This document shows, piece by piece, positions 2,704 to 26,700 of a DNA stretch of 64,000 nucleotides (its first letter is position 1; each line of letters begins with the position of its first letter). The translations under genes were made by a program, and so were the position numbers. Origin of the DNA: Nageia nagi. Taxonomy: Eukaryota > Plantae > Pinophyta. The notes below the pieces were generated by a model that saw nothing but the letters and a program-made list of their open reading frames with translations, had not been told where the DNA came from and searched no databases. The stretch covers positions 18,352,001 to 18,416,000 of the forward strand of contig JBITNC010000002.1 in assembly GCA_050084985.1 (NCBI GenBank). The letters are read 5' to 3'.

Positions 2704-2937
2704 AAACTAATCAATTATAAAAAAATACCAAAAATTAAAAAATAATAATAAAAAATAATTGAATAACAATATTTATGAACCTCCCCGTTTAAAAAGGTGA
2801 ACCTCCAAACAAGTTTACAAATCCAAATTCTATATTTATGAACCAAGATTATTCATTTATTTATAGCAAATCCTATCTAAAATAGTAATCCCTCTAAATA
2901 AATTAAAAAGGTAATCAACATTTAACCTCCATGAAAT

Positions 2938-3218
2938 CTATTAGTTTGTAGGATCTACAAGAGTTTTAAATATCATCAATGTAGGAGGTGGGAGTTGACC
3001 TTGGGGCCTTCAATGTGGGTGCCTTCACATTGCACTTGTCTCCCAATTCCCCTAACAGGTGGTATTGAAAGAAAAATCAACATTTTAACATCTTTTTAAA
3101 CTATTAGTTTGTAAGACTCATCAAGAATTTTTAAATATCAACAATGTAGAGAGTGGAAGTTGAACTTGAGATCTTTAATATGGATGCCTTCACAACTCAC
3201 TTCTCTCCCAACTCCCCT
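2938..3218. repeat. Local tandem duplication, two diverged copies of about 118 bp (2938-3055, 3101-3218)
   Basis: Both copies start ctattagtttgta and end ctcccaa(t/c)tccccta. Confidence 0.8.
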
Positions 3219-3669
3219 ACGCTTTATCGTCAACATTCAATACAATCCTAAAGACAATGAAAGTATAGATAACCACAAGGATTAAAGATCATTACGCATT
3301 CCCTCAGTAATTTCAAATCCTTGTTTGATAATTGCCTCACTTTTCTTTTTATCTTATGATATTTTACATTTCATACTTCCCTATATTTCTATATAGTCTT
3401 TTACCACATGTTCGAACTCAACTGTCAAATGCTTATGTATACTTCTCCCCATCTAACTGATGTGAAAGCTCAATATATTGAAGAAGGCCAACATCTCATA
3501 CAACAACTTTCTTTTCAACCAAACTATAATCCTCTCCATCTAACTGATGTGAAAGCTCAATATATTTCTGAACACTTGCTCTACCCAATGATTAGATATA
3601 TTATGTTTGTATCACTACCAAACTTTTGTATAGTATCTAAATTTATGTTCATAGATAAATGTATTTTTC

Positions 3670-5714: not shown

Positions 5715-8700
5715 CTGTAGAAAGAACCAATCACAAAAATGATTAGATAAACATCAAATTTTAAGTTGATAACTCCAGGGTAGAAAGAACCAAACACAAA
5801 AAGCTAAAAGATTTTTCATCAAAAACCAATTGTGAGAATAAGCTAATAGCCATGAAAGTCTCATGGACATAAGTCGCAAAGGGAAAGTAAAAGTGAAAGC
5901 ATACAGAATTGCAATAATGAGGAGGATCTTTCGTGGATCTACAGTGGAACGTCGTCGTCTAGTGTACCCCTCAATCAACTCATCAGTTGCAGACCCATCT
6001 CGTTCTTCTTTACGCAGATTTGTTACTGGTAAAGTAGGCAAAGCAGGAGACCAGAATGGTAATAAAAATCTCAGAAACTTTCTAGGAAAACGGCCTGCCA
6101 TATAGACCCCAAAAGTAAGATATATAATTTGTCCAACAAAAAATGATGAATATGAAGTAATAACTTTTAATCAAATAACTCTAAGAAAAGCACGACAATG
6201 GCAAACTAGAAGTTATGAAGATGTCCTTTTCAATAGATGACAGAAACTAGAAGCTCTGAAGATGTCCCTTTCAATACTCATCTTGAATTTCACGCAACAG
6301 AAAATAGATTACAATAATCCATCTATCAGAAAACAGACAACAAAAGACTAAATGCTTATATTGTTTATTGGTATGCACTTCACAGGTCAACCATGATATA
6401 CAGTGTATGTTTCTCAAAAAATGAAATATTTCAGAGAAAGACTTGCCTCGTCGAGTGTACTTCCGTTTGCTTTCATCATCATCATCTTCATAAGCATCAA
6501 ATGTTGGGCTGTATCTGTCACCACGATACGAACCTTTTCTTGTTGTTGCACCTGGCTGAAATTAACCCATCCCATAATGACACAAACATTCTTAGATTCC
6601 CACAGAGATGAGGTCAAAAACATAGCCAATGTATAGAAGCCTTCCAAATTCTAATATTTCTATTTATATGATCCCTTTGCCATAGCGCTATTTTAATATG
6701 TTACAACTTCACCGTACAAACTTACACCAGCAGTATTCGGAGACTTTGTGAACTGCGAATCAGGAGACAACGAAGATTGCGGACCAACAGATACAGCCCC
6801 ATCTATCTCAATGATATCCGAGCTCAAACTGGTTGCCGTGCCTGACCGCGTCCGAGGAGTATATGATCCATTAAAAGTTGATGATGATGACTCTCCAGAT
6901 GCATTTATCTCTTTTGTTGTAGTTGATGCTAGGTTAGAACCAGCATTTCCTAGTAGGGGAGCAGTAGTCGTAGTAACAAGCGGCCCTGATAAAAATGCTG
7001 GTGGAGTATCCCGAGGTTCATGCAATTTACCAACATTCAAATCATTCCCCAACAGATTCTTTGCCGGTTCAGTCTGCTAGGATGACAAATAATATCAATT
7101 TATATAAAATAACCAAATGTAGCAATGTATTTATTTCCAATAAAACACAAAGCAGCTCTCTACTAAACAAGGTTTAAGCACTCACTGCATGTAGTCAAAA
7201 ACAAGAAATGAAATCAACTAAATAAACTGCAGCGCTTGCCAAAAAACTATCTTAACATAAAATAATTAGAGAAAAAGAGAGGAAAAACTTAGCAAATCCT
7301 GAATAATTCTGGAGGATAATGCCACATAGCCATAAGCTCCAAACACAACACCATATACTCCTGCCACTTTGATTGGACACTTTTATATTAACCATAAGGC
7401 AATATTAACAATTCGACTTGTTAGACTGTTCTATTATTCTTTAATTGCTTTCCCTGTTATTCACTAAGATTATCTTTCTTTTGACCAATGTTGGCCATCT
7501 TTAGTATCATCTAATGTCTTGTTTTGGAAAAATGAATTTTATATTGAAGAATGTACAAATATATACATATAATGTAAAGGCCGTCCACTTCCTATTTCAA
7601 GGCCAACAATGATGACTCAAAAGTAAAGCAGCAAAGGACATCCAGCCCTGAGCATTTTTTCTTACTAAAAAGATAGAATTTTATTGATGATTCACAAGAG
7701 AACAAAGTAAGTCAAATGGAACCAAATGATATGCCTGGATACAAATGCTATAGGAGCCCAAAGATGATTCAAAATTAAGAAAAGAATAAATAAATAAAAC
7801 ATAATCAACTAAAAAAGGCAGAGTACGATACAAGATCAATGTACAATATTTGTTCAACCAGCATGCAGCCGTCAAAAGCACAAGTGGAGTTAGATCTCAA
7901 ATAAGTTGAACTGCTGATCGGTAAGAATAAGATAAATGATCTTCAACCACTTTGAAAGGGCTGATATAAGAGTGATGATGTACATGGCAGAGTGCCATTA
8001 CTGATCGGACCTGGATGGATAGTATAATTCAAACGCTTCTACTATTCAACATAGATGAAACTGTTGAAGATAACAAAAATCTAGTGATATGAATCTCTCC
8101 AAAAAGGAACCGAAAGCCACATAGGGGACTTGGCACACATCTGAAAGCCAGAGACCATCACTTCTTAGGACAAGAAAGGAAATTTCAAGATTCTATAGTA
8201 GAAAGAACAGCTTGTGCAAAAGACACCTCACAGTTTGCTCTTATCAACCTAGAGTGTTTGATGCCCCAACACTAGGAGAAGAGAAAATAAAGAAATTGTT
8301 AATCCAGCCATTCTTAAGCTCTACCATAGGGTGCGATGCTTGAGGGCGATAGCCTCTTGAATGCATAAAGCCAAGCACCTTTTATCTGAATAGCAAAGGA
8401 AGGTAACCAGTAACCTCCATTATCTCTAATCAAACAATATATTTCCCTCAAATCTCTCAATAGAAGGGGCATCTAAAGACAAAATGTTAATCTCAATCAG
8501 GATTCAAGACCCCTAAATGAAGCACAAGTGCCAAATCCTGTCATATCTGAGAATTTTGTGATTTATCTCTACATGGAATTATGGGAGTGAACTTTGAGCT
8601 GGAAGAGTGAGGTACCTTATAAAACACGAGTTCCATCCTGCTAAATATACTCAAGACAAACAACAATCCCACTGCTGATATAGAAAGCCAAATCTGAAGC

Positions 8701-14700: not shown

Positions 14701-17700
14701 GGCCATGCTTTTTTTTGAAATCCAATATTGTATGTCACATAAGGCGTTAGAAATCTAGTCAGAAAAATCAGTTCCCTTTACAAATCAAAAACTATAAACT
14801 TGAGAAATTAGCTATCAGATGGCATGGTGAGAAATTAGCTATTAGATGGCATGGTGAGATGTAGAATGTAGCAGAACTTAAATTTTTTTTCTGTTTTTAT
14901 TTGTATGATACTCTAAAATAAAATGCAGATACCAATCTTTCACTATTCAAAGTCAAACTGTATACCACCCATTCCCTGAAAAATCCCATCAAAATCAGAA
15001 CGTTGGAATGCTGTTCATATGTGGCTGCTATACTCATCTGACTCACTGCCATAATCATCCGTCTCCACCCTGTGTTTGTTGAAAAAACAATTTGCCCAAT
15101 TTCTTATATTTTCTAAATGCCCAACAGAACCAAATGAAAAATGGCAACTGTTTATATTTGCAGTTTTGTTTTTTAATTTTGAAAATTTTAAGTTTCAACC
15201 AGTTAACTATTTGTTTATGATTTCCGTTTATTGATTAATTTGAGGAGGTTGTGTTAAGAGTGCCAAGATGCTTGCTAGGTTGCTGGAGGAGGTTGTGTTA
15301 GAGGTGGGGATGGAGAGAGTTGTCCAAGTGATTACAGACAACGCAGCAGCATGAAAGGAATAGAGGTCAAAGGCAAAAACAACATTCCAAGCCAAGATCA
15401 CAGACATGCAAAGCATCACAAGAAACACCAAAGAGAAGCTCAAAGACTGATTGAAGCCTTGCATAAATAACAAGTTACAATATGAGCCATTGGATCAAAA
15501 CACTCTCAACCATTCGATCGTGGGAGTTACAAAGCAATCATAACCACCGATCATGGGAGTTACAAAATACTCTCCACCACTAGATTAACTAGGAAAAGGA
15601 CAAAAAGAAAAAAAGAAACCTAATATCCTAGTACATAATTAACATGTACTCTAACACCCTCCCTTAACTAATACTAGAAGGAAGTGGAAACAAACAAGGC
15701 CAAAAAACAAGTGGAATATCCACAAATATGAGTCCTGGCAACAACGCTTGATCAGGTACTCATCTATAGTAAGTCCATAAAACTCTGCTGAAAGATGATG
15801 AAAAATCACATGGGAAAAAACCATCAATCTTTAGAGAAGAAAAGAAGAAAGATGGAGAGAAAGATGTCCTTCAACACCCCCAAGGAAAATTTCTATCACC
15901 CCAAGCAAGAAAGGTGATGAAAAGATGTCTGGAGCAATACCCCCTTTAGGACAATTGTCATTCAAGGGAGAACTGCAAATGCTCCATGTGATATCCCCAA
16001 AATATGTAGATGCCTTTTCGCCAAACTGAATATCTCCCACGAGGAAGAAAGAAGCTAGAAGGCATACATCGAAATTCTTCCCACTCCAAAAAAAGTGTGA
16101 GGAAAGAACATGAAGGTTGGTACTTGTGACGATGAATGAAACTGCGAACCATGTTGAAGTGAAGCAATCACCAATAAACTAGGAAGTGTAGAAGGACCAT
16201 TGTATTGTTGCTCAAGGAAAATAGCTATGGAAGCAATAAGAGGTAAAGAAGCCTCAAAATAGTCTCCAAGATCTCCTAAAGAGAGTCCAATCGAAGATAC
16301 TTATGAGAAAATCTCACAAGACTCCTAATGAAAGATAAAGAAAGCAAAAGAATGCTCCAAGGCAACAAGAGTAGAAGGACAAGGTGGCTCATCAAAACAA
16401 GGAAGGCCCAACACAATAGAGTCTTCAAAATGCTTTGCATCGACAAGATATGGAGGCAAATATCCTCATGAAGGTCAACAACATCCAAAATGTATGACTC
16501 TATGAAAAGAGAAGCAACTCCATCCAAAATGTCCTCGTCGAATGTGATCTCTGAAGAAGCTAAAGCCATGCAAATGTCCTGCAATAGAGTGTTTGTAACT
16601 GGATTAGAAACATCATCCTCATCCAAAACATCCTTATGCATCAAAGATTCTTCATCACAAGATGATATATCCTCAATGTGTGCACAAATAATGGAAAAAT
16701 CCATGTGAGGAGATGGTGGTAAATCCTAGTTAACAGGGGGCAAAACATCACTAGAAACCATGCTAGTAGTGTATCTAATAAGAGCAAAAACATAACCTGA
16801 TCTAGGGTACCAAAAATGCCACCCATATGTGTAAGGACAAGGCTTAGAAATAAGACCAAGAAGATATGGCAAAAGATAGAACCTAAGTGCTCAACAAGTT
16901 GATCTCCCAAACGTCCTCAAGCTGGGCGAACCTCCTCAAGCTGGGCCAACCTTCCAAAAGGCTTAAATGACTGGATCTGAAGGCCGGATCTGATCTTTGG
17001 AACACAATTGCTCTAGAGCACCTCGTGAATCTTGTGAGAGATACACTCCTATGAACACAAGGTTTCTCGTTCTTGGTTAACAAAAGCTCCTTGAGGGTTT
17101 TCATCCTCAAGAAACCTCCTCACTACAGGTTTTCATCCACATGAAGGGAAGAAACTAGCTTGGCGGCTAAGTCTCAAAGAAGATGTCCTTCAAGTGATGT
17201 GCCACACCCTTATATAGTTGGATGTCCCATTTTGTGGGTCTAGATCTCACTTCGAAGTCATGCACAACTGGACGCCTCACCTAGGATCTCACAATGCCAT
17301 TTCGGAAGAGTAAAAATCATACCTAGAGAGCTACGCTACAAGATTACAAGTGAGAACATAAATTAATGCCTCAAAAATATTAAAATCACTCCTAGATATG
17401 CGACATCCCACAAAGAGAGGATTAATCATCTTTTGGGGCTCACAATTATTCATAAAGTCCCATTATTATTTAAAATATAAAAAATAACTTCTAAATTAAT
17501 TAAATTGCAATCACACATCCTTAGGAGAGGGACGTCCCACCCTTGGTGGTCAAATAAGTCATAATGAAGCAAATGAATAGAGCGCTCCATGTGTGCATAA
17601 TTGGATAGTCCTCCACAAGACTCCAAGCTCCCCCTTGGGCCCCATGAACCTTATGAGAAGCTCCAACGTGTCGAAAATCACCATCAAGATGCCAAGTGTC

Positions 17701-20700
17701 CTCCAAATCATGACACATCTTGCTTGGATGTGGGACATACTCCTCCAAATAGGCCATATCATCTTCAAAATATACTTTATTGAAAGGATGTAAAAATGGG
17801 AACATTACAAGTCCACCCCACTCAAAATTGCTAGTCCTCAAGCAATGCCAGATTAGATGCATGACTCCATTCACTGCAACAAGATCTTCAATATCAAGAT
17901 CATAAGCAAATATGAAATACACTAACTCATGAGCATGCATGTCCATCCTAGCAGCTATTGCCCCATGAGCCCAAAGGTAAAACACCCAAAACATCACAGA
18001 AGTTTCAGCTAAGAACATCACACCCAACACCACCTCAAGGTCCTTCTTCATCATTGCATAGATGAAATCTACTAGCTGGTGCATGTGCACATCAGTCCCA
18101 AACTCTGTGGAAAACACAGCCATCCTCATCAACTCCATGGCAGCCTCAAACCACATTTGTTATCCCAGATGCAAGCCCAAACATCACCATTGCAGCCTAT
18201 ATCACCATCAAGTCTGCAGTCCAAATCAGCACAAATGCAGCTCCTAAAACAGCCCCGAACCATATGAAACATACTGTTGTTCTCAATGGGTCTGCTGTTC
18301 CCAATTGTTGAGATGACAGTCCCAGATATCATCATTACAACAGCAGTGAGCAATATCAAAAACTCAGTCCAAAAAAAACCAAATGCAGCAGCAAACACAG
18401 GAAAAGAATCACAGCTGTTATTAACAAAAGTGCAGTCCTAAATGTCATCAACGGCACATAAAATCCAACAGTGCCAAACATACAACATACCATGTCACAA
18501 CAACAGTCAAGATCACAGCAAACATACCACAAGATCCAAACCAAATTCAATCACAACCTTCAATGCAAAAACATCGAACTCCCAGATTACATCACGAACA
18601 AGTCTCAAAAGACCAAACCATTACTCACCTCTTGTCTATCTAGACAGAGAGTCCAAAAATTGCAACAGTAGCTCAAACATGAAATCTCAATGATTACATG
18701 CAAACCAAAATGAACATATAATCTTCTAGTGTTCTTCATTAGCATTTACCCCCCAATGCATACGACTCTTCACCTAAGGGTAGGACCTGTCAATGTACAA
18801 CGATTTGTTCTCTCAAGTGTCTAGGATCTCCTCGGCAAATTGCCCTAAGTGGACTGCCCTCCAGATGATGCAGTCTGAGCCAATCAAGCCTCCCTAAATC
18901 TGGACGTCCAACTTGGATGCTTGAATCTGGATACTTAAAACTCCCAACGTCCACCTTGCTTGTCCTTTGGACCAAATTCACCCCATGCTCCCTGTAATCT
19001 GAGATTTCATGTTGCATGTTGAGATCCTTATCCTTCATTTCCTCCTTCAAATCAGAAATGAAACTTTCCTCCTTCATCATATACTACCTCCAATTTGCTT
19101 GAAGTTCCTTGTTGAGGGTAGCGATCTTTCATTCCCCTTAAGGTGATCTCACGTCCTTGAGACTTGAATCTCATCTCCAAGGTTTGATAATTGGTGTAGA
19201 TCTCTCCCAAGGAATACAACCATTGTACCCCAAGCACCATGTGGGGAAATCCACCAATCGAAAAAACATAGAAATCATCTCTCACCACATAATCCTCTAG
19301 TCTAACTCCAAGCTTCTTCACCACCTTGTCGCAAAGAGAGATCTGACCATTGGTGTTTGCTACTCGGAATCCAAAAAAATCCTCAAATAGGAGACTCTTC
19401 TTCACCACAAACCCCTCATCGATGAAATTGTGGGTTGCCCCACCATCAATCAAGACAATAACATCCTCTTTGATTGCCTTTCCTTGCACCCGAAGAGTTA
19501 GGTACTTGGATGCCCAAAAATTGTGGGCATCCTAGATCTGGCCGTTTAGACTCCACTCGCACGAGATCTGGCTGCTCAAGATCCTCCAAATCTAGCTCCA
19601 TGTCTAACTCCTCATCATCCGAAATCACTTCAACATAATGGATTTTTCCTTTGCCAAGGCAACGGTGACCCAACTCCCATGGATTCCTACAACTTCTTCC
19701 ACTCCAAATCATTCCTAGTAGCCTCATCCATCTTTTTGGTAGCAAGGGGTAACTGACTCTTCAGGAAGTTGGACGAACTCTTCTTAGTGGAATAGTGGGT
19801 TTGGATCTCATCATAGCAAGCTCCAAGGTTAACACTCTTTTGATGGCATCCTATTGGGAAGTGGGGGCAAAAGCCTTCACCATGCCCCTCAATGGTTCCA
19901 TCAAACCCTCTATAAACAAAAACAACACCCTCTTCTCTGAAATGTTTGGCACCATAACGGAGATTCGCTGAAACTCGACAATGTAGGCCTCCACATTGCT
20001 CTTCTGCCTCATTGATGCTAGATCCCAAAAATACTCGTCCTCATCCTTTAGATCAAAGCGCTCCAAGACTCTTCAACTAAACTCTCCAAAGGTACAAACA
20101 AATTTATGGCCTAATGTAGTTAAGCCATGAAACCACCAATCATATGCAACTTCGTCCAAGTGTAGAGTTGAAAACTGCATAGCATCCTCTTCTAGCATGG
20201 GGCTAAGGGTGAAGTATGTTTTCAATTTCTGCAACCATGCCCTAGTCGTCATCTTGTTACTCCCATCATACATCGATACTTGCATCCGACTAATCTTGAG
20301 CTGAAGATCTCTCCTATCTCTATAGTGTCCTCCTGGTAAATGGCCTCCTCCAACTCTCTTCCCCAATATTTCGGGATAATTCTGGAAAATGATCAAAGCT
20401 TTGAACTATTCATCATTCCCTTGGTACTCCCGCTATAGGGCATTCAACTCCAAGGGGGTCACGAAACTCGGATCTACTTCTTCCTTTTGCAAGAACATAA
20501 GCCTAGACGACCTAAGTAGAGGTGGAAGACGCTCAAAGGATGGACGCACGAGTGACTGCCTTGCTGACATCTTTCCTCCTCGTGGATCCAACATGGGTCC
20601 TTGAAATGCAGGTTGGGTGGACTCTTTCCTGGTGGAACTTTCTCCTTGCATCGACTGAACAACTCCTTGCTCCATCTTGGGTGACAATCTTGTCATCATG

Positions 20701-23700
20701 TCAAGCATAGCATCAAATTTCCTCTCGGCTCTATCATTATAGTTTTAAACCATTTCCTCGTGCCTTTCTTCGTCTCCATGCATCTCTCCTTCGAACCTAT
20801 CCTCCATCTGATCCATCTCCTCTCCTTCTGGCCGGATCTGAAGATTTGGATTCAACTTATTCTTCCTTATGTAGTATCAATGAGTAGATTGCATCAATAC
20901 TCACTACACAAGCTACCAAGAAACCAACTCTGATACCACTGTAATGTCCCAAGTTAGCACAAATAATATTTTACTCAAAATTGCAAAATGCAAATTCCAA
21001 ATCACGACAATTTTATTTGAGCCACAAATAAATCAAATCTAGAATAAATGACAATTGTGCAATTGCAAAAATGCTCAAAATTTGTCCACGGGTTGGACAT
21101 CTCACTCTAAGCCACAAACAACTAGATCTAATACACCTAAAAATGCTCACAATGCTCCTCAACACTGAACAAACCACTGTAAGGCTGAGAAACAGAAAAT
21201 TGACCTTCTAGGCTAGGTGCACACTCCCACAAGCTAGAAAAACCCCCTCAAGCTGGGCAAACCTTCCAAAAGGCTTAAATGACTAGATCTAAAGGTTGGA
21301 TCTAATCTCTGAAACACAATTGCTTTGGAGCACCCCGTGAATCCTGTGAGAGATCAACTCCTATGAACACAAGGGCTTTCGTCATTGGTTCACAAAAGCT
21401 CCTTGAGGGTTTTTGTCCTAGAGAAACCTCCTTACTACGGGTTTTCATCCACAGGAAGGGAAGAAACTAGCTTAACGGCTAAATCTCAAAGAAGATGATG
21501 AATAGCAAAAGAAGTCCTTCAATTGATGTGCCACACCCTCATATAGTTGGACATCCCATTTCAGAGTCTAAAGCTTACCCCGGAGTCATGCACAACTAGA
21601 CACTTCACCTAAGATCTCACAATGCCACTTAGGAAGAGTAGAAATCACACCTAGAGAGCTAAGTTACAAGATTACAAGTGATCATAAATTAATGCCTCAA
21701 AGATATCAAAATCACTCCTAGATATGGGGCATCCCACTTAAAGAGGATTAATCCTCTTTTGGGGTTCACAATTATTCATAAAGTCCCATTATTATTTAAA
21801 ATATAAAAATCACTCCTAAATACAAATAAAACACTCCTAACTTAATTAAATTGCAATCACACATCTCTAGAAGAGGAACGTCCCACCCTTGGTAGTCAAA
21901 TAAGTCATAATGAAGCAAATGAGTGGAGCACTCCATTTGTGCATAGCTGGATAGTCCTTCACAAGTCTCCAAACTCCCCCTTAGGGTTTAGGGTTTTTTT
22001 AGGGCTTTTTTTAGGATTTAGGGTTTATATTAAAATTTTTAGCTTTATATTAAAATTTTTAGCTTTATATTAAAAATTTTAAGCTTTATATTAAAATTTT
22101 ACCATATCACTCGCTGCTCACAGATAAACAAACAGAGACACAGATTTCACATAATTGAAATTATCATTGGAGGACAAAAACAAAAGATCTTACAAAGTGT
22201 ACATTGCAAAACCAGTTTCGGATTATGTAATCCTCACCAGTTGCAGTAGTACTTTGAAGAAATAATATGGAAATATGTCAATTAAATAGGCGAGAGGAGG
22301 TTGAAACAATATGTGTTTTCAGAACAGATGCAACTGTTCATCTTCAATTCTCACCAATGGATGAAGGAGCAACACCACATGCTATCAAACTTCATCCCTG
22401 AAATACACAGGAGTCTTTCATGCTAATGAAATAGATTTCATAATAATTTAAATTGATAAACTTCATAAATTTAAATAAACTTAAAGTTTAAATAAATAAT
22501 AAAGTAAATTAATAAAAAGTATTGAATCAATTAAATTTAAATAATCTTACGTAGATTAATAATAATCATTATATAGTAAAATTTAAATAAAACTGATAAT
22601 TAATAATTATAAAATCAGAAAAATGATATAATATCAAAATTCAATTAAAAGTTTATCAAAATTAATATATTAATTTAAAAAATAAATCAAGTAACAAAAT
22701 AATAAAACTATAAATATAGTGTAAACTATATAAAATAGTTAAAACTAATAAATAGTTTAAATTATTAAATTTATTAAAAAATTAATAATATTATATAATA
22801 ATTAATTAAAATAATTAAAACTATATAAATAGTTAAAATTATTAAAATTAAATATTATTTTTAAATAATATAAGGTAATAAAATTTTATAAATTTTAAAA
22901 CCAAATACTATTTATTGAAATCTACTACGTAACAAAAAAGAACCTAGCTTTTTTGGATTTCTCCAACAGGTGATAGGGGGAAGTATGAATGACAGAGCCA
23001 GAACTTCTTGGTAATGCCCATGGAGTTTAGGGTTTAGGAAAACCCCCAACTCCAAGTCTAGAGTAGAAGAGCTGTAGTTAAGCTTGAAGACAAGGGGGTC
23101 CGTTTTCTTCCTCTTGGTGCCTCAAGGAGACGAGAAAGAAGCTCTGGTTTATCTCCCTAGGAGACTTTGTTGAAGCAACGAAGTAGAAATTTTGGTGGGT
23201 ATACTCTAGCCCTCAACCTTTGAAAGAAAGAATTCTTCAACTCTATGAAACCGGTAGTATGAGATTTTCTCAAGAGATACCTACGGAGCTCATTGATAAC
23301 GAATGCTCTCTTCTAGTGTGGAGGATGCCATGACTTGTATGGAATATATTGATAAATGTTTAATGGTTTTGGATAGCACTTTGTGGATAAAATGCCAGAA
23401 GAAGTAAAGCTTGCATCCTTGTAAAACGTAATATCAAGAATGTCTACAAAGAACTGTGAAACACATAGCGTAATGTTGATCTCAAGATAGACGTTTTGGT
23501 AAAGCTGGAAAAAATCCTATAAAGACTCTTTGGAGCCAACCCAGATTCCAAACGCATAATCTATGAACCTCTTAAAAAACAGCAAGTTCTCTTTGTTGAA
23601 GCATGAAAACACTTGCTTCTCCAAGTCGCAGAGGAAGAGACAAGCATAAACCACTACGAAGTTAGAACCCATTGTTGTGCCGCGAATCTGTTGGTACACT

Positions 23701-26700
23701 ACACCGCCAAATTCAAGGTAATACTCAGTCAAAACAAGTTCGGCTAAGCCCATAATAATATCCAGAAGGGGGGCGGGGAGTTCATTTTCTGCAAAGAAAA
23801 CTTCAAGTGTGCAACGGAGAGCCTGAAGTCCAACAGAAGTTGGAATACTTGGGTATAATGACTTTACATCAAAGGTGAAGAGCCAGCAATCCGTGGGAAG
23901 TCTCATGGAGGAGAGACCGCAGAGAAGGGAAAGCGAATCCTTCAAATGCGTCTCTTGCTTCAAGAGGACAAGAAGTAGTAAACAATGCAGTAGTCTTAAG
24001 GTAGGTTCTAAAATGTAGCCCGTATAGGAACAGATTGGTCAGCCCACAAGCACTGGTTTGTGGATTTTTGGCAGCAGAAAGAATGTGCATGGGTGTCCTT
24101 TGGAAGAAAGGTTCTGTAGCAGAAAGCTCTTTAAAGGCTTCAAAAGATTAGAAATACCAATAAAGTGATTTACCTTATTCCATATAAGACACCATGGAAC
24201 CTCCAAGACTTTACGATAGATCGCCTCATCAGAGAATTGTCTAAACCCTTCAGTCGCATACCAATCTCGATCCAAGACGCACAAGCCTAAATTCTTGTCG
24301 GCAGGTCTGATAATAATGTTACGATCTTTGCGCAGGAGCTTCAAGCTTCTGAGAAGACATCTTGGGAGGGGAGGAAGTTTAGTGAAGTCACAATGGGAGA
24401 TGCGATCTTTGAACTCCAATTTACATTTCTGTATGATAGCCTCCAAATCGTTGTTAATCTCTATGGGATTCCAATTGGATTTAGGAATCTTGAAAGGATA
24501 AACGCAGAAAAATGGAAGCAATTCAGTCCTTGCATCAGGTAGTGGAATCGACTTTGGTTCAGGTCCAAAGTATGCACGGAGTCAGATCTTTCGTATGAAT
24601 GATCTGAACTCATCATACATTTCATTCTGGGTCATGGGCGGTGGACGGGGGATAAATTTGATTCCCAAGCCTAAAAGCCTAAAATCACCTTCAAGACACC
24701 AAGTCTCCTCCAAATCACGAAATATCTCTCCTAAATGTGGGATGTACTCCTCCAAATAGGCCATATCATCTTCAAAATATATTTTATGGAAAGGATGTAA
24801 AAATAGGAACATTACATTCATCCAAATGAAATGAAATTTGGACACAAGGTGGCAGAATACAGATGCAGGTCTCCACAAAATTTGGTGAAAAAATTCATAA
24901 CCAATCCAAAGATATCACGAAAATACAACTGCAATACGAAATCTGGATAGGCTTTAGTAGAAACACCATAACTTTCTCAAGATGCATCCAAATCACCTGA
25001 AATTTTGGGAGCATGTGCAAAACCTATAGATGCAGACCTGTACAAAATTTCGTAACAAAATTCATAGTCAATCCTAAGTTACAGAAGCAGTACGAAATCT
25101 GGATAGACTTTCGTAAAAACACCATAACTTTCTCAAAACAAATCCAAATTGCCTGAAATTTGGGGAGCATGTGCAGAACCTGAAGTGCAGTTTTGTACAA
25201 AATTTGGGGAGCATGTGCACAACCTGAAGATACAGCTTTGTACAAAATTTGGTGACAAAACACATAGCCAATCGAAAGATAGTACCAAAACATAGCAGAT
25301 CCTTTTACTGGGTGTCCTCAAAAAAAGCAACGAAACCATCAAATTTTCAAACCTTCATAACTTTCACATACGAGCTCGGATTCAGGTGATTCAAAAAGTA
25401 AAATTGATCTACTTGAAAAAGGATATCCAAATCTATACTCAGAATTCAGATTTGATGGATAAAATATAGTAGTCAGAAAGACAAAGTTTCAAACACAAAC
25501 TCATCCTTCACAATGAACCAAATAAAAAACAAACTTCAAAGGATATCAAGGATGCATACAAAAACTCTATCTAGCTTTGGTACCATGAAAGGAATGGAGG
25601 CCAAAGGCAAAAACAACATTCCAAGCCAAGATCACAGACATGCAAAGCATCACAAGAAACACCAAAGAGAAGCTCAAAGACTTGCATACATAGCAAGTGT
25701 ATACAATATGAGCGATCGGATCAAAAACACTCTCAACCATTAGATCATGGGAGTTACAAAGGAATCATTACCGCCAATCATGGGATTTACAAAATACTCT
25801 CCACCACTCGATTAACTAGGAAAAGGACAAAAAAGAAAAAAGAAACCTAATATCCTAGTAGATACTTAACATGTACTCTAACAGAGGTTGTGTTAAGAGT
25901 GCCAAAATGCTTGCTAGGTTGTTGGAGGAGGTTGTGTTAGAGATGGGGATGAAGAGTGTTGTGCCAAAATGCAGCTGAACAGATTTTGGAGGAAAAATTT
26001 TGTGATGAGCTGAAGTAGGGCTCACTTCTCAAACGTGCCCTAGGAGAGGGACGTTCAGCTTGATGCTACGAAATTGTCCAAACAAGCTCAAAATTACCAT
26101 AATTATCTAACGTCTAGCTAATTTGACAATTAAACTATTTCGAACATGCAAAATATCCCCACAAACTTAATGCAGCAACAAGGAAGCAATAACAAAAATT
26201 TAGCTATGAAAATGCACTTCTAGATCCAACGTCCAAGCATAAGAAGACAAATGGTAAATCGAGATAGCAATAATGTAATTGCATTTGATATAACAAGAGA
26301 ATAGCGCAATTACAATATTTTTTACCTAAGGAGCTTGTACTAAGACTTCCTCCAATTGGATTTTGTTGGATAGCTACGGAGCCTTTCCAATCGTAGTAGC
26401 AACAAGGCCCAACCTAGGGCTTCCCAACTCCTCTGTGATGGAACCAATAGTGTTCGTCTCAAGAAAGTTGAAGTGAGCTTGAGGCTAGCTTCCTATCACC
26501 TCAATACCTCAAATGCAAGTTACCCTACAAGTGGCAGAGATAGAGTTCTCACACTCAATCCAATACAAGGGGGATTTTCATCAATAATCAACATATCTCA
26601 TAATGACTAAGAGTCTCCCTTTTATAGACTATGTAGTCTCTCTTCTAATCTTGCATTGAGATGATCCAACAGTGGAGAGATGTGATCCTGTGCTCATGTT

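Follow-up and report, generated by a model that had tools for sequence, protein, structure and literature searches.

Coprina elements, Penelope-like elements (PLEs) that lack an endonuclease (EN), are on record in Selaginella moellendorffii (RepBase Sm1 and Sm2), and also in fungi and the diatom Phaeodactylum (PMC13159263, PMC12477314). In reviews up to 2025-2026, Selaginella is the only plant given for telomere-associated EN-less PLEs, and Dryads are the only PLEs given for conifers (PMC12477314, PMC13159263, PMC8557442, PMC10473749). A genome paper describes Penelope as absent from other gymnosperms. No description of EN-less PLEs in seed plants was found in full-text literature searches. 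Here we report an EN-less PLE copy in the gymnosperm Nageia nagi. It lies in a stretch of 64,000 nucleotides (assembly GCA_050084985.1, contig JBITNC010000002.1, forward strand, positions 18,352,001 to 18,416,000), which we call the window and whose own numbering is used throughout. Minus strand 24680->21986 of the window is a single insert, a 5′-truncated and decayed copy of an EN-less PLE, which is best seen as adding a new host group to the Coprina-type EN-less PLEs already on record. We think it very probable that this copy is a dead, 5′-truncated Coprina-type PLE that is EN-less by nature, that its lineage is common to Cryptomeria, Ginkgo and Selaginella, and that it was primed from a telomere-type seed at an internal break. 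A first-pass annotation of the window had proposed a second, EN-less PLE lineage in a gymnosperm. The lineage is supported, as an extension of the Coprina type known in Selaginella and not as a new kind of element. If true, the presence of a second PLE lineage, one without EN, in conifers and Ginkgo would alter the picture of Selaginella as the only host plant and of Dryads as the only conifer PLEs, and would supply a retroelement partner for plant telomere biology.

In the passages of three papers that set out the Athena/Coprina model (PMC8557442, PMC12477314, PMC13159263), the element RNA ends 3′ in reverse-complement telomere repeats, which pair with the G-rich overhang and prime reverse transcription without an endonuclease. 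The element described here resembles Coprina in its single reverse transcriptase (RT) open reading frame (ORF) with DKN, RT1-7 and thumb, in having no GIY-YIG, in its 3′ reverse-complement telomere repeats and in a hammerhead in the flank. It differs in its seed-plant hosts (Cryptomeria, Ginkgo and Nageia nagi) and in that the window copy is interstitial and dead; the comparison is made with a tree without named Coprina. With Athena and the Terminons of bdelloid rotifers it shares an EN-less RT, C-rich 3′ repeats complementary to the telomere and a hammerhead (PMC8557442, PMC12477314), and head-to-tail chains split by telomere repeats are seen in its metagenome relatives. Athena has at least two ORFs, with one or more additional ORFs upstream that carry a coiled coil, very large units and a hammerhead adjoining the repeats; here the hammerhead lies 0.16-1.5 kb upstream of them, and the window copy lacks its 5′ part.

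Dryad is similar in having a PLE-type RT in a gymnosperm host. Craig et al. found Dryad nested inside Penelope/Poseidon (PMC8557442). Dryad carries a C-terminal GIY-YIG, sits in an otherwise animal Penelope/Poseidon clade and is presumed to have come by horizontal transfer (PMC8557442); neither the domain nor, with proxies in the tree, that clade position is found for the window element. Chlamys and PLE-X share the green-lineage host, and PLE-X of Selaginella and Chara is also EN-less. They differ in the N-terminal GIY-YIG and CxC linker (Chlamys) and in the 28S rDNA target (PLE-X) (PMC8557442), whereas in the relatives studied here no N-terminal EN was found and telomere repeats are present instead.

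Insert and boundaries

The ends of the insert were determined by comparing the window with itself. The left flank (21900-21985) is 88% identical to 17554-17639, and the right flank (24681-24816) is 87.5% identical to 17674-17809. Because both flanks align to one uninterrupted paralogue nearby, the insert can be delimited as 21986-24680. Comparison of the filled site with the empty-site paralogue showed no target-site duplication at the insert, and ~34 bp of the paralogue have no counterpart at the filled one. Host sequence at the 3′ junction is CTCCCCCTT(A/G)GG; with the TTAGGG that opens the tail it has 5-6 bases in common. Filled and empty site make a clean pair for comparison and illustrate how an element of this type can come to lie outside a telomere.

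On the 5′ side, full-length related proteins align from their residue 37-44 onwards, and this alignment begins exactly at 24680. A sibling contig from sequencing run X1 aligned up to 24687, beyond which its reverse complement encodes NLSQRYLSH, the PLE N-terminal motif. Because this contig runs on into an N-terminal motif without counterpart in the window, the copy is 5′-truncated relative to its siblings, as had been noted at first pass. Identical or near-identical short pieces were found in sequencing runs, namely 161 identical bp in an air metagenome and 290 bp with one difference in the run of organism A. Together with the relatives in Cryptomeria and Ginkgo, these pieces agree with a gymnosperm pollinated by wind as host. 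No full sibling was found in two weakly matching sequencing runs, in which diverged sibling contigs were present. An 8-bp unit, AAGCCTAA, repeated 2.2 times at 24667-24684, straddles the 5′ insert junction exactly; it is possibly a microhomology or a repair footprint.

As shown in Table 1, the ORF remnant is followed in sense order by an AT-rich block, ~190 bp of ordinary sequence, a hammerhead, ~100 bp, a 20-bp repeat and the telomere-type tail. The near-pure A/T stretch of ~470 bp had been described correctly in the first-pass annotation. In the metagenome locus closest to the element (L001, 51% identity to P0001, the best database match described below), an AT-rich block of ~100 bp lies between the stop and the hammerhead (one 100-bp bin, GC 8%), and a sibling contig from run X2 crosses the end of the window ORF into the AT-rich block (22804-23080). 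Because L001 has this counterpart and the X2 contig spans the ORF end into the block, the AT-rich block belongs to the element.

Table 1. Features of the PLE insert and of its empty-site paralogue, in window coordinates
Feature	Position	Strand	Basis or remark
Whole insert	21986..24680	minus	Both flanks match one uninterrupted paralogue
RT ORF remnant: N2 motif, DKN, RT1-7, thumb, C-terminal tail	22915..24680	minus	Translations and tblastn
Natural stop TAA of the family ORF, without downstream endonuclease	22912..22914	minus	Relatives stop at the equal motif; EN-tail hidden Markov model empty
AT-rich 3′ untranslated region (UTR) block, degenerate short tandem repeats, GC 5-15%, ~470 bp	22440..22911	minus	
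Minimal type-I hammerhead ribozyme	22203..22247	minus	Structure scan and covariance model R1
20-bp tandem repeat, 3.8 copies, between hammerhead and tail	22024..22100	minus	Tandem Repeats Finder (TRF)
3′ tail, C-strand plant telomere units	21981..22023	minus	Final unit overlaps host CTT(A/G)GG, microhomology 21981-21985
Paralogous empty site of the host repeat	17554..17809	plus	~34 bp (17640-17673) absent from the filled site

Reverse transcriptase frame

The PLE-type RT motifs quoted at first pass are present on the minus strand and can be read directly. The frame includes SWHP and RLRARVYPP and then, past a one-base frameshift near 23091, PLVFKL. LGLKFIP, DKN, RT1-7 and thumb motifs are present, and the top HMMER matches are PLE proteins, which places the copy among the PLEs. 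In tblastn, the Cryptomeria protein P0168 (626 aa) was covered over residues 37-622 and P0001 over residues 44-600, at 54-57% identity. Pfam found nothing in eight ORF pieces of the window; this silence is uninformative because the local Pfam scores even full-length relatives weakly or not at all.

The frame contains five in-frame stops, at 24584-24582, 24041-24039, 23519-23517, 23315-23313 and 23159-23157. The catalytic YIDD is changed to FIDY, with the second Asp replaced by Tyr at 23558-23556, and the DD pair is invariant in 15 aligned relatives. The copy is dead because it has five stops and FIDY in place of the invariant DD.

Relatives and the missing endonuclease

A 173-aa piece of the RT core was used as the HMMER query against 1.84 billion representative proteins and gave 5018 matches, the best full-length ones being 555-660 aa long. 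A word-indexed search with the best match, P0001, led to Cryptomeria japonica proteins annotated in RefSeq as uncharacterized (P0168, 626 aa; P0169, P0171, P0172 and P0174), to the Ginkgo gene models P0002, P0011 and P0207, to Closterium proteins and to Selaginella moellendorffii XP_024523476 (P0003). Full-length EN-less relatives with a like C-terminus are Cryptomeria P0168 and P0171, Ginkgo P0002 and P0011, and Selaginella P0003. The EN-less PLE proteins of Cryptomeria and Ginkgo are unnamed in RefSeq and in the Ginkgo gene sets.

The first-pass annotation had placed the TAA right after the C-terminal linker motif, and it lies there, at 22914-22912. Cryptomeria P0168 and the window copy share the C-terminal ending motif before the stop. 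In an alignment of 15 relatives, each complete sequence ends no more than ~10 residues past CWxNxRxLxSxLVxS, and P0001 breaks off ~40 residues earlier. Relatives running on into GIY-YIG had been named beforehand as the finding that would speak against an element EN-less by nature; the relatives instead end near this motif and have no GIY-YIG. Pfam detected GIY-YIG in five of six EN-containing (EN+) candidates selected by their tails (P0231, P0083, P0130, P0144 and P0240, not P0046) and none in P0168, P0003, P0002 and P0011, which were scanned alongside. We also built an EN-tail hidden Markov model (HMM) from the linker and endonuclease tail of 11 tail-selected EN+ PLE proteins. It recovered all eight held-out EN+ proteins (E 1e-11 to 1e-68) and the EN+ locus L065, and found nothing in the EN-less proteins. 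Against six-frame translations of the whole window its best match had only E 1.9, at an unrelated place. L065 (1246-4521) is a distant metagenome relative at 26% identity, whose ORF matched the EN-tail HMM at E 4e-30.

An endonuclease permuted to the N-terminus had been kept open at first pass. The Ginkgo proteins have N-terminal extensions of ~215 aa (P0002) and ~1,000 aa (P0011, a chimeric model), and the other relatives begin 20-45 residues ahead of the IHNLS motif. GIY-YIG was not found in the P0002 and P0011 extensions by Pfam or by the EN-tail HMM, whose training on C-terminal endonucleases may make it overlook the Chlamys type. As weak evidence, the Ginkgo extensions would speak against a permuted N-terminal endonuclease.

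Phylogenetic position

A careful IQ-TREE analysis was run with 43 rows, 606 columns and LG+C20. The window frame was read through with X at each break, unrepaired and with no consensus. The EN+ side was represented by proxies, namely a frog Poseidon-like protein and 13 unnamed tail-selected candidates, among which Pfam found GIY-YIG in five of the six scanned. The window copy clusters with P0001, two Cryptomeria proteins and P0170 (98/90). Next outward are Ginkgo P0002 (99/95), P0173 with P0175 (97/90) and Ginkgo P0011 (98/90), followed by unnamed metagenome proteins (99/98) and the Selaginella EN-less protein (100/99); Closterium lies outside these. The 14 EN+ proteins are all placed elsewhere, in two separate clades (100/98 and 100/100). 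A quick tree of 84 rows agrees with the careful one. As proposed at first pass, the RT does not nest inside EN+ elements, for which only proxies stand in for Dryad; it forms a clade with Cryptomeria and Ginkgo (99/95) that is sister to Selaginella (100/99). The tree is at least compatible with a long residence of EN-less PLEs in land plants.

Alternatively, the copy could be a Dryad-type PLE, originally EN+, from which the zinc finger and GIY-YIG have been deleted and which came by chance to lie next to telomere-like repeats. Nothing beyond the gymnosperm-like host speaks for such an origin. The stop, however, stands at the natural C-terminus of the family, the RT clade is split from all EN+ proteins by branches of at least 100/98, no EN remnant was found in any frame of the window, and the tail lies exactly at the independently defined insert boundary. 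We give a deleted Dryad practically no weight. The element is assigned to the Coprina-type EN-less PLEs and not to deleted Dryads because of its natural stop, its EN-less relatives, its separate RT clade and the sense-strand telomere arrays described below.

Telomere-type tail and its arrangement in relatives

On the sense strand the tail reads, from 22023 to 21981, CCCTAAA TCCTAAAAAAAG CCCTAAAAAAA CCCTAAA CCCTAA. Its element-proximal units are variant 11-mers (TTTAGGGTTTT). A search for CCCTAAACCCTAA with at most one mismatch gave three matches in the window, where 0.12 were expected; each is on the minus strand and inside the element. None of 100 shuffles reached three. Two of the three constitute the tail, at the insert end that the flank comparison had defined independently. 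The CCCTAAA-like 3′ end of the sense strand reported at first pass is thereby borne out, and the insert ends, like Coprina, in reverse-complement telomere repeats located exactly at its boundary.

Metagenome contigs were scanned by protein alignment, which gave 80 loci. Arrays of at least three CCCTAA or CCCTAAA units were found in 18 of these loci. All 39 arrays have the C-strand on the sense strand of the element, and none has the G-strand. They occur both upstream and downstream of ORFs, as expected of head-to-tail chains at chromosome ends. On contigs that carry both a hammerhead and a downstream array (for example L055, L033, L027, L036 and L011), the order of ORF, hammerhead, spacer of 0.16-1.5 kb and telomere repeats is the same as in the window.

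The tail could instead be a telomerase product, if a break had been healed with TTTAGGG or if the site had once been a terminal or interstitial telomere tract, to which the PLE was attached before the end was rejoined. Such a history would yield the same orientation as priming from an element seed, the relatives do lie between true telomere arrays, and telomerase could plausibly have extended the host end TTGGG. However, the empty-site paralogue is without a telomere tract, the variant 11-mers (TTTAGGGTTTT) would be templated more easily by a degenerate element seed than by telomerase, and the rejoining of both flanks with ~34 bp lost suits one-step repair better. We regard a telomerase origin as unlikely but still worth serious consideration.

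Some further observations were made on telomere-type units. Plant-type CCCTAAA arrays are present in some metagenome relatives, for example L035 (4-88). L033 holds both CCCTAA and CCCTAAA arrays (1044-1067 and 6239-6301), which suggests mixed telomere units or a chimeric assembly. In L001, ~250 bp separate the hammerhead and one CCCTAA unit from the start of a new ORF (in 2800-3389; MVRSYTGPITRSRS..., Q/P-rich repeats). This ORF resembles the N-terminal part, or ORF1, of another unit in tandem and recalls the N-terminal extension of Ginkgo P0002. The conserved C-terminal peptide FLNPKLHG (window 23027-23039, minus strand) is encoded by CCTAAACCCTAAAC, so that the ORF itself holds two telomere-like units in a row, and L001 has identical nucleotides for it at ~2150-2165 (CTAAACCCTAAAC); this may be a coincidence or an internal seed.

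Hammerhead ribozyme

Hammerhead motifs had been reported at first pass. We found one, a minimal type-I hammerhead with the core CUGGUGA at 22247->22203, so that the hammerhead seen in Coprina has a counterpart here. Rfam did not find it in the window (gathering score or E<=10), nor a hammerhead in 20 relatives (gathering score). We used our own structure scan and covariance model because minimal hammerheads with a 2-bp helix III fall below the Rfam models. The structure scan requires the core CUGANGA...GAAA and helices I, II and III. When a departure at one core position was allowed, it gave a single match on either strand of the window, 22245->22205: UGCAA CUGGUGA GGAUU-ACAU-AAUCC GAAA C-UG-G U U UUGCA. 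Helix I has 5 bp, helix II 5 bp with a 4-nt loop, and helix III 2 bp with a 2-nt loop.

In 20 related loci the scan gave 21 matches. Every one is on the sense strand, at 0.2-1.3 kb 3′ of an ORF, which in two cases belongs to a preceding unit. All 21 have a 2-bp helix III, a 2-nt loop and a palindrome, ACUAGU, ACCGGU, ACAUGU or AUGCAU. An alignment of the hammerheads of 13 relatives showed 93% pairing, which is partly by construction because the scan itself demands pairing. Compensatory changes occur in six of 11 pairs, and pairing collapsed in shifted controls; both still fit a real structure.

The covariance model R1 was built from the 13 relatives with the window sequence excluded. In the window it had one significant match, 22247->22203, over its full length (22.5 bits, E 2.8e-5, the E-values being rough); the next match had E 0.13. 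Applied to the 80 loci, R1 gave 49 matches at E<=0.01, every one on the sense strand; 26 of the matched loci had not been used for training. Each of these hammerheads lies either 3′ of an ORF, at a distance of 0.2-1.3 kb, or within a preceding unit upstream of the matched ORF. In the window, the core is CUGGUGA in place of CUGAUGA (A6 -> G), and the palindrome of helix III is lost (ACUGGU). Because of these two changes the window hammerhead is probably inactive, as fits a decayed copy.

Proposed insertion at an internal break

The anatomy of the insert, its boundaries, its homology and the strand-specific arrangement in relatives can be read directly from the alignments. From the tail, the junction and the relatives, we infer telomere priming of the window copy. 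A full element would have one RT ORF that ends just past the C-terminal motif, a 3′ UTR formed by the AT-rich block and the minimal hammerhead, and a (CCCTAAA)n 3′ end. The CCCUAAA repeats at the 3′ end of its RNA would anneal to a G-rich DNA 3′ end, normally the telomeric overhang, and the annealed DNA 3′ end would prime reverse transcription without an endonuclease cut. In the case of the window copy, the primer would have been a plus-strand end ...CCCCCTT(A/G)GG, exposed by an internal break within a dispersed repeat. Complementary DNA (cDNA) would have been begun at the CCCUAA end next to the host 3′ end and extended through the uncleaved hammerhead. Synthesis would have halted ~40 codons into the ORF, and its 5′ end would have been attached to the opposite side of the break, with a loss of about 34 bp of target and without a target-site duplication. 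Decay would have followed. Capture at an internal double-strand break looks likely because there is no target-site duplication and apparently a 34-bp loss.

Morrish et al. (2002, 2007) reportedly described endonuclease-independent LINE-1 insertion at DNA breaks or uncapped telomeres. By analogy, such events would share with the window copy the absence of a target-site duplication, the loss of target, the 5′ truncation and the priming on an existing 3′ end. They belong to another class of retroelement, and the seed here is complementary to the telomere, in contrast to poly(A).

Integration may also have been served in trans by the endonuclease of an EN+ PLE such as Dryad, or of a long interspersed nuclear element (LINE), with no part for the tail in priming. 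The interstitial location would suit this, and EN+ Dryads are reported from conifers (PMC8557442). Against it stand the absence of a target-site duplication with target bases seemingly lost, the junction microhomology with the tail, and the family-wide sense-strand telomere repeats, which favour attachment to ends. A trans-acting endonuclease is, in our view, very improbable.

Several points weigh against the copy being a telomere-primed Coprina-type insertion. The copy is not at a chromosome end, where Coprina elements would be expected with the 3′ end facing the centromere, and is interstitial, inside a dispersed repeat with an empty paralogue. The tail is short and imperfect and consists of two perfect units, a partial third and A-rich variants. 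With 180 nt between it and the tail downstream, the hammerhead cannot expose the telomeric 3′ end of the template by its cleavage. The empty site is represented by a single paralogue (88% identical), so that the apparent loss of 34 bp of target could instead reflect an indel between paralogues. The tree is without named references for Dryad, Coprina (including RepBase Sm1/Sm2 and fungal elements) or Athena. In principle, a separate upstream ORF of the full element could still encode an endonuclease.

On a wider scale, gymnosperms, at least Cupressaceae and Ginkgo, may keep an old lineage of telomere-attaching EN-less PLEs, one that the seed-plant literature does not record and whose sister is the lineage of Selaginella. 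The lineage may still be active, at chromosome ends and at internal breaks, because intact ORFs exist in Cryptomeria, and the window copy would then be the footprint of a break repair primed by a telomere-type seed. We consider the case for this wider proposal evenly balanced.

Genomic context

The first-pass annotation had placed the element in an intron, which is a possible setting. No exon was found in the window, and its ORFs of at least 130 aa gave only a retroviral protease match. The neighbours of the insert are repeats and the remains of a Ty3/gypsy long terminal repeat (LTR) retrotransposon on the minus strand, with RVP_2 at 19055-19489 (E 1e-5) and gag-like ORFs at 19687-20396. The flanking host repeat contains repeats of its own: 24816-25000 and 24982-25156 are similar (75%), and 25156-25252 holds 2.2 copies of a 44-bp unit.

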